Assembly (NCBI GenBank): GCA_964057225.1
Contig: OZ059899.1
Span: 5,394,001 to 5,458,000, forward strand
Length of the DNA: 64,000 bases
Direction: 5' to 3'
Source of the DNA: Auanema rhodensis
Lineage: Eukaryota > Animalia > Nematoda
The notes under the pieces are model-generated. The model did not search any database, was not told where the DNA came from, and saw nothing but the letters and a program-made list of their open reading frames with translations. Shown piece by piece: positions 50,778 through 56,936 of this stretch (its first letter is position 1; every line of letters begins with the position of its first letter). Made by a program: the position numbers and the translations under genes.

Positions 50778-53351
50778 ATGGGCATTGCCCGGTTATTGGT
50801 ACCTAGAAAAAAAGAAAATATATTCAATTTCTTGCTGTTAATAATTTGTGCATTTGTGATTTATTATTATTATTGGGTTGTTGTACCACAACGTATAGCA
50901 GGTTAGAATTTCTATATTTCTTAGTATCGTATTGAAAGTCGCCGCATCTCAGAAGAAAACGAGGAGAGATTAATCCGTGATCCTTATCTCTATGGCAGTC
51001 TTCGTCGAGGTGCTCGGTATGTAAGACCGAATTTAGTGAAAAAAGTTCGAGGGCAAGGAGAGTTAGGAGCAGCAGTCATATTAACTGGCGTAGACAAAGA
51101 ACTAGGAGAAAAAGACATGAAAAATTGGTTCATGAATGTTAGAGCAAGGTATGGTTTTTGAAAATTGAATTTGTCGCTTATTTTCATTAGAAAAAGCAAT
51201 TGTTTCTTTTTGTGTTCCTTTACGTAACAGACTTTTGTTACACAACTCATCAATCCACATGAGCATTTTCTGTTCTTTTTCACAGGTTGTTAGAAACCTA
51301 ACATTTAAAAAAATATATCTGTTTTCAAGGCTTTTTGTTTTGAATTTTTTGAAAAAGAATACGTTCAAATTTCAGTGACAAGATATCATTAGATAGAACT
51401 CTGCCAGATACAAGAAGGGATGAATGTAAAACTATAAAGTATGATTATGAGAACTTGCCTAAGGTTGTGAAGTAGAGAAGTACATTCTCTAATTTTCTGT
51501 TTTTTTAAGGCATCTGTTATTATAATTTTCACGGACGAAGCTTGGTCTCCTTTACTCCGAACAGTTCACTCTGTTGTTAATAGAAGTCCTCCACAGCTGT
51601 TGGAAGAAGTCATTCTTTTGGATGATAATAGTCAACGGGGTTTTCTTAGTAATTATCAATCTATGACCTTTTTATATTTTATAGAAGAATTAAAAGGACA
51701 ATTAGATGATTACATTCGTATTTTTGATGGAATCGTACGAATTATCCGAAAAGATACTCGTCATGGTCTTATAAGGTATGTATCAGATGATAAGCTCTTG
51801 TAACTAATATATTCAGAGCAAAATTAGCGGGTGCTAGAGAAGCAGTTGGAAGCGTTGTTATTTTTTTGGATTCCCACTGTGAAGCTAATGCCGGATGGTA
51901 GTATATTTATTATTATATTCCTTAATAAATTATGTTAAGGCTGGAGCCTCTGCTGCAAAGAATTCATGATAATCCGAAGGCTATTGTTTGTCCAGTTATA
52001 GATCATATTAGCGCTGAAACTATGGCCTACAATGGTGACAAGTATGCCACTTCGGTGGGAGGTAAACTTTCATAGGAAATATATTTTGGTATCCAATATT
52101 GCTTAGGCTTTTCATGGGCTCTTCATTTCACCTGGGAATCTATGCCAGAAAGTGAAGCCGAGCGAAGAAAAAGTGTGACAGAATATATAAGGTATCTAAG
52201 TTACTACTTTTTCTCCAGGCTAAATAGTAAGTTTTAGATCGCCTACTATGGCTGGGGGACTTTTGGCTGCAAATCGCGACTACTTCTTCAAAATAGGAGG
52301 CTATGATGAAGAAATGGATATTTGGGGTGGGGAAAATTTGGAAATATCCTTTAGGGTATGTTTGTGGTTCAAATTATTACAATATTGTTAGTAAAGGTTT
52401 GGATGTGTGGAGGTTCCATTGAGTTTATCCCCTGCTCCCATGTTGGGCATATATTCAGAAATGGTCATCCTTATAACATGACAGGTTTTAATAAGAACTT
52501 TTTTTTTTCGAAAAATTATTAATGAATGTTATTTAGGAAGAAATGGCAATAAGGATGTTCATGGGACGAATTCTAAACGCTTAGCTGAAGTGTGGATGGA
52601 TAATTATAAACGACTTTATTATTTACACAGGCCAGATTTAATTGTGAGCGTATGAATTGTTATATAGATTTTAAAACCAATTTTATAGGATAAAGATGTT
52701 GGGGATTTGACTGATCGAATTGAACTTAGAGATAGGCTTAGTTGTCAATCATTCAAATGGTATTTAGATAATATCGTACCAGGAAAATTTCTCATGGATG
52801 AAAATGTTCAAGCATACGGAACTGTAAGAAAAGTAAAGTTACATCTAGAAATCCAAAATATTTCAGCTTCATACTTTAGTTGGGGGATATAGAATGTGTA
52901 GTGATACCCTTCAGAGAAACGAAAAGTCGAATTTTTATCTAGGTGTTTTTCCTTGTCAAGGTAAAGGTAGTTCTCCACAGGTTAGTTAATTCACGAAATT
53001 TTCAAATTTATCTTAATATTGGAGATTATGTCGCTTGCACGATCAGGAGAACTAAGAAGAGAAGTTGTTTGCGCTCAAGCTTCAGATTTTAATATGCTCC
53101 GTACTCGCGCGAAAGTTCTTATGGTTAGATGTTTTGAAGGTATTGATAAATGGACATATGAGGTAATTTCCATTTCATATAATGATTACAGAATATTTAA
53201 TCCTATAAATTTTTAGTACTCGCAAATAAAACATGTTAAATCAGGACTGTGCTTGTCTACCAGAGATTTAACTGGTGGTGATGATATTATTTTGGAAACT
53301 TGTGATAGCGGAGATGGACATCAACTTTGGAGATTTACCAGTCCAAAGTAA
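50778..53351 (+). CDS. gly-9: Polypeptide N-acetylgalactosaminyltransferase, gly-9-like copy A
   Basis: Type II TM N-terminus, [49 protein letters not shown] (DxH), [57 protein letters not shown] and a C-terminal ricin lectin domain. From recall, closest to C. elegans GLY-9. Confidence 0.93.
52302..52416 (+). repeat. 115-bp exact duplicate, copy 1 (in GalNAc-T A)
   Basis: TATGATGAAGAAATG...GTGTGGAGGTTC is identical to 55941-56055, including the 41-nt intron 52356-52396. Confidence 0.95.
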
Positions 53352-53716
53352 AAAATTTAACAAAATCTTTTTTCATTATACGTAATAGCTCGTAGACGAA
53401 TTTAGCACGAACTATAGCGAACTTACAACTGGGTTAAAATAATTGCTCTTGAACATTCACTTGTTATTTATTTTAAATTACGAGAATACGATTCATATAA
53501 TATTCTTATAATTAATTTTTATTTGTATTTGTTATTCTCTTTGCTTTAATTCTCAACTTGGCTGTGATTCATGAAATTGACTGTGATGTGATCGTAATAG
53601 TTATTAATATCTATAAATTTATGTTTTATTTCGAGCATTTTATTTTTTTGTTTATTTCTGTAATTATTTTCTTTCTGTTTTATATATAGATTGCTTTATT
53701 AGCTTATTTAGAAAGA

Positions 53717-54444
53717 ATGAGTGATGGAGAAACAGAGGTTGTGTCCTTGGCCCCTGGACCAATTCCAGGAGTTTCTTATCCCCTAAGAATGGTATATTGT
53801 GGAGGTATGATTATACAAAATATAATTCATTTTAAAATGTTGTGTTTCAGAATGTTCTATGCCTTTGGAATATTGTGAATTCAGTGGCATCACTGAAAAA
53901 TGTCGTAAGTGGGCTGAGAACAACGCTCCAGATGCTTTAGGAGCTTTGAAACTTGAGGGAGATGGAGGAGAATTCGATGGAGACGAAAAGAAACATCAGA
54001 AAAGAGGAGGGAAGGGTGTTAAGGTTCTGTTCAATACATTTGTAAAAATTTAATTCATGAATTTTCAGCCTGTTAAGGAAAGAAAACCTGGATCCGGTAA
54101 GATTACTCTCCAAAGAGAGCCTAGAGGAAAGAAAAGTGTTACTGTTATTAAAGGATTGGCTTTGAATGGTTAATAAGAACTTAAAATAGGCTAATCTTTT
54201 AAAATGTTTAGAAATCGATCTCAAAGTTGCCGCGAAGTTTTTCGCACAGAAATTTGCCTGTGGAAGTTCTGTTACTGGAGTAGACGAAATCGTTATTCAA
54301 GGAGATGTTAAAGATGACCTTTTTGACCTTATTACTTCAAAGTGGCCTCAGGTTTAGTAATTGCATTAGAAAACATAAAAATAAGCTTATTGATTTCAGG
54401 TTAGCGATGACCTCATCGAAGATTTGGGGGACAAGAAGCGTTAG
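53717..54444 (+). CDS. DENR: Density-regulated protein (DENR/Tma22, SUI1-domain re-initiation factor)
   Basis: [20 protein letters not shown] zinc-binding N-terminus, [51 protein letters not shown] and IEDLGDKKR*; five exons. Confidence 0.96.
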
Positions 54445-54659
54445 AAACGGGGTTTAGAAACTGTTTTCCACTTATTATTATATCTACTTCTTTTTGGTGT
54501 TTCTTTATTTTACATTGTGCAAGTTTCATTTGGTTTCTGGTAAATATTTTATAAGTTTCTTCTGTTTTACGTGATTATTCAATATGGATTTAATCGAATT
54601 TAATTATCTTTAACTACGAAATTTTTTGTTCAAAAGTTAACGTTTTTTATAGGCCTATA

Positions 54660-56936
54660 ATGAGCCGTATACGATGTACATTAAGACAGAAGGCTAGGAT
54701 ACGAAACATTGTTTTTGTTTTAATTGGAGGATTTTTTTTTGTTACATGGAGTAGGGATGGCTCCAAAGCATATTCTATTGATTCTGATACATCCTATGAT
54801 CCTGGTTTTCATCAGGTGATTGCATCAAGTCTACATTATTTTCAACAAAACGTATATCCATTATTAATCTTTTTGTTCTTAGATTCCAGATTATACCAAA
54901 CCTAGAGAAGGTCCTGGTGAGGATGGAGCACCTGTTGAATTATCAGAGGAAGAGAAAAAAATATCTGAAGAGCAGATTAAGAAATACTTTATGAGCGTGA
55001 TTTCAAGGTATATATAAAATACTTATGCTTTTTTGAACTATGTTAATTAAGTGATAAAGTCCCATTAGATCGTAGCATACCGGATTCTCGATCTCAAGAA
55101 TGTCGAGCACTAAACTATGATCATATTTATCGTGATCCTCCTACCATTTCAGTTGTAATTATCTTCACAAATGAATTTTTTTCATGTGGGAAAAAATCTG
55201 AATATGTTTCATATAAAAGTTTTTTTAGCTGTTATGAGAACTGTTCACTCGGTTGTTAATAGAACCCCTAAAAATTGGTTAAAGGAGATTGTTCTTGTTG
55301 ATGATGTTAGTGAAAGAGGTACATTTAAAAAATTTTTGTTGAATAAATTTAAATTCTATTCAGAGGAACTCGGAACTAAATTAGAAGAGCATATTAAACG
55401 CTTTGGATCATTAGTGAAATTATTTAGATCAACTGAGAGATTAGGTCTTATTAGGTTTATTTTTAATTTGATTCTTGTTATTCAAATTTCATTAGAGCCA
55501 AGGTATTTGGTGCTAAGCGAACAACAGGAGAAATTTTGGTTTTTCTGGATGCTCACTGTGAAGCCAATATTGGATGGTAATCAGTTATAATCAGTTTTTG
55601 TCATTTTTATTAAATTTTTTTTGAAGGGCTGAACCAATTGTTGCTCGAATTAGAGAAAATAGAAGAGCTGTAGTTTGCCCTGTAATAGATTCTATTTCTG
55701 ACACTAACTTGGCATACCTGGGTGGATCCCATGGTGGTGTTGGAACGTTTTGGTGGTCCTTACATTATAGTATGGGCCCTATGCCGAAAAAAGAAATTGC
55801 TCGCCGAAAAAATCCAGAAACTGATTACATAAGGTTGAAGTGAACCGTCCCACCTACTTAAGCAAAGATATTTTAGATCTCCCACGATGGCTGGTGGTCT
55901 ATTTGCAGCTAATAGGGAATATTTCTTTGAAGTTGGAGCATATGATGAAGAAATGGATATTTGGGGTGGGGAAAATTTGGAAATATCCTTTAGGGTATGT
56001 TTGTGGTTCAAATTATTACAATATTGTTAGTAAAGGTTTGGATGTGTGGAGGTTCAGTAGAAATCCTTCCTTGTTCTCATGTTGGCCACATATTCCGTTC
56101 AGGTCATCCATACGACATGACAGGTATGACTAAATAATGTTTTTTGATAATATGATAATTCTATCAAGGAAGAAATGGTAACAAAGATGTTCATGGAACC
56201 AATTCCAAGAGATTGGCTGAAGTTTGGATGGATGACTATAAGAGATTCTACTATATGCAAAGAATGGGCTTGAAGGTAGTTTGTATTTAATGCTGAAGTA
56301 TTGAGATTGTTTTTAGGATCTAGATGCTGGCGATCTTACTTCTCGTAAAGAATTAAGAGAAAGGTTGAAGTGCAATTCTTTCAAATGGTTCTTGGATAAT
56401 GTGATTCCTCAAAAATATGTGCTCGATGAAAATGTTCATGCTTTCGGTATTGTTAGAGGTGAGCGACGCCTATGTTTGGACACTCTGCAACGTTTGGAAA
56501 ACAAGGTTCCTACTTTGATTTTTTATATTATTTATCAGAGATTCAGGGTATTGTTAATGTAGGAGTTTACAATTGTCAAGACGCTGGAAGCTCTTCTGAG
56601 TTTTTCTCGTATTCCCGTGATCGGGAATTCCGACGTGAAACAACATGTGTAGATGTTGGAGATTCCATAGCAGCAGGCAAATTTAATGTGATATTAAGAG
56701 ACTGTGACGAAGATAATCTTATTCCGTTTGAACATACGAAGGTCGGATTTTACTATCAAGAAAATAAATGAAAAATATGTTTCTAGGGTGGAGGACTGAT
56801 CAAACATATTCAGCGTGATTTATGTATAGATATGGAAAATGTAGAAGCAGGTGGAGATGTATATTTCACTCATTGTGATTCTAGTAAACCTAGCCAAATA
56901 TGGAAGATGGCTGATTATTATAATCTTCCAAACTAG
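54660..56936 (+). CDS. Polypeptide N-acetylgalactosaminyltransferase, gly-9-like copy B (diverged paralogue)
   Basis: TM N-terminus, [69 protein letters not shown] lectin repeats and terminal [11 protein letters not shown]. Mostly the same intron positions as copy A. Confidence 0.92.
55941..56055 (+). repeat. 115-bp exact duplicate, copy 2 (in GalNAc-T B)
   Basis: Identical to 52302-52416. Confidence 0.95.

Follow-up and report, generated by a model that had tools for sequence, protein, structure and literature searches.

A 115-bp identical tract carrying a complete intron links two diverged GalNAc-transferase genes of Auanema rhodensis and points to recent interlocus gene conversion

How can two genes that have lost all resemblance at their silent sites share a stretch of DNA, a whole intron included, without a single difference? 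This question is raised by a 64-kb window of the nematode Auanema rhodensis (the whole stretch of DNA analyzed here, C7:5394001-5458000 of the assembly; all positions given below without a contig name are counted from its first letter). Two intact polypeptide N-acetylgalactosaminyltransferase (ppGalNAc-T) genes, referred to as gene A and gene B, are located here on the same (+) strand and each carries one copy of the tract, at a spacing of 3.6 kb. Direct comparison within the window showed that positions 52302-52416 of gene A and 55941-56055 of gene B are identical at 115/115 nt. We consider a recent, short, and non-reciprocal interlocus (ectopic) gene conversion between the two same-orientation paralogues to be very probably the origin of this tract.

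The match is maximal, as mismatches are found directly at its two ends (52301/55940 and 52417/56056), and both copies are read on the plus strand. According to the gene models, the tract consists of the last 18 codons (54 nt) of an exon, which encode the DxxxxxWGGENLE motif, a complete 41-nt GT-AG intron, and the first 20 nt of the following exon (VWMCGG and two additional nucleotides). The intron lies entirely within the tract in both genes: in gene A it spans 52356..52396 (+), as supported by the continuity of the frame between ISFR and VWMCGG, and in gene B the gene model places the identical intron at 55995..56035 (+). The tract is the sole exact repeat of at least 30 nt in the window. A search of the whole assembly (181 Mb, 112 contigs) yielded exactly two copies of the 115-mer. 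The next-best match is a third paralogue at a distance of 490 kb, which is 72% identical, and a third paralogue as common donor of both copies is thereby ruled out.

Outside the tract, the two genes differ strongly. Amino-acid identity is 59% over 392 aligned core codons. When the tract is left aside, the nucleotide identity amounts to 62% and the identity at third positions to 45%, with a proportion of synonymous differences (pS) of 0.71, corresponding to a saturated Jukes-Cantor synonymous divergence (dS) of ~2.2, and a nonsynonymous divergence (dN) of 0.36. In the 20 codons directly upstream of the tract pS is 0.84 and in the 20 codons directly downstream it is 0.98; even at the very edges of the tract, synonymous divergence is saturated. 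In the two exons that carry the tract, the portions outside it show identities of 70% and 69%, and the codon comparison revealed no graded similarity around the tract. The introns give the same picture, as the seven others at shared positions align like shuffled sequences (z = -1.3 to 1.5 in global alignment), whereas the tract intron pair reaches z = 11 against shuffles. Furthermore, three intron positions differ between the genes, with introns at 51464-51509 and 52062-52106 (+) in gene A only and at 55186-55228 (+) in gene B only, according to the exon models. The duplication must therefore be old; the three differences themselves represent gain, loss, or sliding of introns since that duplication. 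The knife-edge limits of the tract against saturated flanks speak for a single recent copying event.

The length of the identical run was evaluated with a Sawyer-type permutation of 1176 aligned coding sites containing 419 differences. The observed run of 74 coding nucleotides was never reached in 20,000 trials (p <= 5e-5), the longest permuted runs averaging 14.5 nt and extending to 38 nt at most. Beyond the tract, no run of identical coding positions exceeds 19 nt, a length within the permuted range, so that the coding alignment holds no second run beyond chance. In the sense of GENECONV and Sawyer, the tract is thus longer than the divergence of its flanks predicts. Among degenerate codons that encode the same residue in both genes, 104/199 are identical outside the tract (52%) versus 20/20 inside, an outcome with a probability of ~2e-6 under a null model conditioned on amino-acid identity, in which the intron is left uncounted. 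Because the identity extends to the intron and to synonymous positions, which are free of selection at the protein level, such selection is excluded as its cause. The initial annotation of this window had argued the same. It had also reported the base-for-base match and its content and had pointed out that the flanking codons and the other introns lack such identity, all of which is borne out by the direct comparison, the exon models built from frames and GT-AG sites, and the divergence described above.

How recent the event is can be bounded from the tract itself. No differences were found at its ~53 nearly neutral sites (41 in the intron and ~12 synonymous), from which a divergence of at most ~0.06 per site (95%) was computed. 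The tract is consequently far younger than its saturated surroundings, and its age is no more than a tenth of that of the gene duplication. The exchange was moreover non-reciprocal, since each locus has retained its own surroundings and the gene for the density-regulated protein DENR still stands between the two: both ppGalNAc-T genes are intact, each is bordered by its own diverged flanks, and no crossover product, deletion, or fusion has arisen.

A perfect match between two neighboring paralogues could also have been created in the computer, namely if the reads or the consensus of one paralogue had been imposed on the other during assembly or polishing. The assembly contains no alternative haplotig copy with which the two loci could be compared, which leaves some room for this explanation. 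On the other hand, an artefact would have to switch from one sequence to the other and back within 115 nt, so that each copy resumes its own diverged sequence, and reads whose flanks are ~30% diverged would not be placed on the wrong paralogue. It would also have to replace a whole 41-nt intron that is otherwise unalignable between the copies, which base-level polishing does not do, while keeping the reading frame and the GT-AG sites in both genes. The window, finally, lacks any further exact repeat of this kind. An assembly or polishing artefact is therefore regarded as improbable.

The history of the intron can be followed across the 10 members of the GalNAc-T family in this genome. An intron directly after ISFR is common to three other paralogues (L003, L004, and L006), and in other nematodes many exon-sized open reading frame (ORF) fragments continue past the exon end into an intron at this very site. 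In all these cases, the intron sequences are unrelated to one another and differ in length. The intron position is ancestral, and the event replaced an existing intron. Replacement rather than gain follows from the presence of introns at the same position elsewhere, all of them unrelated in sequence; intron gain by copying is ruled out, as the position is common to other paralogues and to other species. Two further paralogues depart from this arrangement: L005 (G000:C7:15372844-15373660, minus strand) is without an intron after ISFR, and in L009 (G000:C3:5970453-5971260) the intron is instead found a few codons upstream, after WGGENL.

Searches beyond this genome returned distant relatives. 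A protein word search with the open frame of gene A (exon and start of the intron) retrieved 477 fragments of exon size, none of them from this species, with identities of at most 83% over the whole query and at most 86% locally. The nearest ones are from nematodes, Meloidogyne being the named one. None of the 477 fragments (0/477) reads through into the same intron, and no close relative is on record in this search, the best fragments being 80-86% identical on the exon. The tract intron had no exact match in the metagenome contigs scanned. A degenerate scan of the same kind of data (the 11-residue exon end, an intron of 30-60 nt, and VWMCGG) found only one distant contig, L011 (ODIC01003748.1, 1475-1582, minus strand). 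This contig carries a nematode-like GalNAc-T gene of 30% G+C with an intron at the same position and of unrelated sequence.

These comparisons also bear on whether the identity could have been kept by long-term purifying selection on the nucleotides themselves, as would be the case if a small RNA, a splicing regulator, or an antisense target had been embedded in the tract since the duplication. Such a constraint would agree with the location of the tract where the protein is most conserved, and the minus strand folds slightly better than its shuffles (z = -2.0). The plus strand, however, does not (z = -0.45), and the same-position introns of other paralogues and nematodes, with their unrelated sequences and lengths, speak against such an element. 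A search of the tract against Rfam gave nothing relevant, and a structured or known RNA in the tract was rejected on account of this result and of folds that are not convincingly better than shuffles. In addition, an intron of 41 nt is too short for a mirtron or a small nucleolar RNA (snoRNA). Selection, finally, does not yield 115 identical positions out of 115 with knife-edge limits beside saturated sites. Nucleotide constraint is thus regarded as very improbable.

With conversion as the preferred explanation, it can be asked what the event meant for the two enzymes. The DxxxxxWGGENLE sequence is the Gal/GalNAc-T motif, which contacts the GalNAc of the donor (PMC3825155), and the initial annotation was correct in naming WGGEN as the UDP-GalNAc-binding element. 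The tract encodes 24 residues that hardly vary among the paralogues or among other nematodes: the peptide of one relative's fragment (P0002) is identical to all 24 residues, and the other paralogues differ at a few positions. Given this near-invariance, the conversion probably changed little or nothing in either protein and would have been silent at the protein level. The initial annotation had held that ectopic conversion across 3.6 kb homogenized the donor-binding core while the acceptor-specificity regions stayed distinct. The conversion itself is upheld by the identity of intron and synonymous sites, but the functional gloss reads too much into residues that were near-invariant anyway. The pattern is better read as survivorship, a patch being tolerated where both proteins were already alike.

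How such a patch may have been laid down, that is, by which repair pathway, with what anchoring, and with what selective effect, we infer as follows. The DNA of one copy would have been damaged in or beside its 41-nt intron, most probably by a double-strand break, and would have been repaired from the other paralogue, located at a distance of 3.6 kb on the chromosome itself or on its sister chromatid. The intron with its adjoining codons could then have been copied by synthesis-dependent strand annealing or through a short heteroduplex patch. The ends of the patch lie in the exon stretches that are most alike at the DNA level throughout the family (TGGGG.GG.GA.AA and TGGATGTGTGGAGG), and these conserved stretches may have supplied the homology for strand invasion and re-annealing. 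As the encoded residues were already the same or nearly so, the patch would have been selectively neutral and hence able to persist.

Important to note here is that two points weigh against conversion in this form. First, the evidence is confined to the paralogues of a single assembly. Second, the flanks are ~70% identical and other paralogue pairs share no more than 14-17 bases within the exon parts of the tract, which offers little homology for canonical homologous repair. Over the 74 coding nucleotides of the tract, these other pairs are 68-82% identical, with longest uninterrupted matches of 6-11 nt for the 5' part and of 14-17 nt for the 3' part (TGGATGTGTGGAGG). Two options can be considered: short homologies may have been enough, or the likeness of this spot had been preserved by previous exchanges.

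The latter option amounts to a recurrent or ongoing conversion hot spot, in which the present patch would be the latest of many exchanges confined to the invariant motif. It is a variant of the conversion hypothesis, and its likelihood is contained in that of the latter. The modest flank homology would be easier to explain if prior exchanges had kept the stretch alike, and repeated conversion in tandem pairs has been described for C. elegans (PMC3966223). Against this stand the single tract observed, the lack of a second run beyond chance, and the abrupt rather than graded fall of similarity around it. We consider recurrence less likely than not. The same holds for the view that the patch came from the other paralogue, 3.6 kb away, by templated short-patch repair anchored in microhomology, as opposed to classical homology-dependent conversion. 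If this were true and common in the genome, nematode paralogues could exchange sequence long after their silent sites have become saturated.

Gene conversion is well documented in Caenorhabditis, where it provides a standard for a single recent event of the kind favored here. In a survey of 7,829 duplicate pairs in C. elegans, Semple & Wolfe found conversion tracts with a mean length of 117 bp and a range of 12-2958 (PMC3966223). Within a chromosome, conversion becomes less frequent with increasing distance (1-8 kb), pairs in the same orientation are favored, and 15% of the events extend into compact introns (PMC3966223). The tract reported here resembles these events in its length (115 versus a mean of 117 bp), its location on one chromosome, its spacing of 3.6 kb within the favored 1-8 kb, the orientation of the two genes, its extension through a compact intron, and its sharp limits against diverged flanks. 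Judged by this comparison, an interlocus conversion of this size, spacing, and orientation, with an intron included, is typical for nematodes. The classical Caenorhabditis cases that have been reviewed include fog-2/ftr-1, col-12/col-13, hsp-16, and zim/him-8 (PMC3966223). What sets genes A and B apart from such cases is that they are far more diverged, with saturated synonymous sites and flanks of ~70% identity. By comparison, fog-2 and ftr-1 are 82% identical with a synonymous divergence (KS) of 0.28, and their converted region adjoins 70 bp of uninterrupted identity.

The locus is thus a new instance of a well-known process and adds no new mechanism, enzyme, or functional change. It does provide a tidy natural example of a minimal conversion tract, as its limits are exact, a whole intron was carried along, and the two genes are saturated at silent sites. 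It is also a data point on the flanking homology that interlocus conversion requires in nematodes, a quantity that has been poorly estimated so far (PMC3966223). A practical consequence is that any phylogeny or dating based on this family requires the catalytic-core exon of genes A and B to be masked.

Both host genes were modelled from open frames and GT-AG junctions, giving exon models without stops; domain searches were run exon by exon, and the codons of the exons were concatenated only for the substitution counts. Introns are 41-52 nt long, and the window has a G+C content of 32%; both values fit a nematode host, as do the nearest exon fragments and the spliced-leader RNA array mentioned below. 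Gene A (50778..53351, +) is supported by ORFs, exon models, and matches to PF00535, PF02709, and PF00652 of Pfam. Its core exons are located on the plus strand at 50925-51148, 51376-51463, 51510-51639, 51685-51775, 51817-51897, 51940-52061, 52107-52191, 52238-52355, 52397-52484, 52537-52643, and 52689-52832, and its lectin exons follow after 52832, up to the stop at 53349-53351. The model is provisional at the donor of the first exon and at the first lectin junction, and the start at 50778 is approximate. Gene B (54660..56936, +) rests on the same types of evidence, its match to PF00535 being weak. Its exons, likewise on the plus strand, are found at 54660-54815, 54883-55007, 55052-55185, 55229-55318, 55364-55454, 55496-55576, 55627-55833, 55877-55994, 56036-56123, 56169-56275, and 56317-~56460 or beyond, with lectin exons after ~56460 and the stop at 56934-56936.

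The predicted products of both genes start with a hydrophobic N-terminal membrane anchor. The catalytic GT2-type domain (PF00535) was detected above the cut-off in gene A (exon 51510-51638, 28.4 bits), and the DxH metal-binding motif reads DSH in gene A and DAH in gene B. Glyco_transf_7C (PF02709) scored above the cut-off in both genes (31.4 and 24.3 bits in A and B, respectively), and the same 13-residue stretch, DxxxxxWGGENxE, is present in A and B as the Gal/GalNAc-T motif. The best match of the tract exon among solved structures is GalNAc-T1, residues 288-326 (PDB, E = 1e-13). A ricin-B lectin domain (PF00652) was found above the cut-off in gene A at 53217-53348 (30.5 bits). In gene B, the two matches to this domain, at 56463-56768 (25.1 bits) and 56787-56933 (21.7 bits), are each singly under the cut-off because single exons were scored. 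Taken together, the architecture predicted from these domains is that of polypeptide GalNAc-transferases of family GT27, and both products are predicted enzymes. As in the gly enzymes of C. elegans and the mammalian GALNT1-20, type II topology is combined with a GT-A domain carrying DxH, the DxxxxxWGGENLE motif, and a C-terminal ricin-type lectin domain, and the A and B proteins show nothing unusual against this family.

The gene between A and B (~53717-54357, +) was recognized as that of DENR by Pfam matches of its exons to DENR_N (2e-12) and SUI1 (9e-11). This unrelated housekeeping gene on the same strand interrupts the 'tandem' pair; it took no part in the conversion and sets the 3.6-kb spacing of the paralogues.

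Two further observations were made in passing. In a protein from another nematode (P0001, ENA assembly), the 11-residue junction formed by the exon end and the start of the intron is repeated four times in tandem. Elsewhere in the A. rhodensis genome, a large tandem array of SL1-like spliced-leader RNA genes extends over G000:C3:6741531-7099372, with at least 51 full-length matches to RF00198 that score 54-62 bits, below the gathering score, and are often spaced at 252, 504, or 1008 nt.

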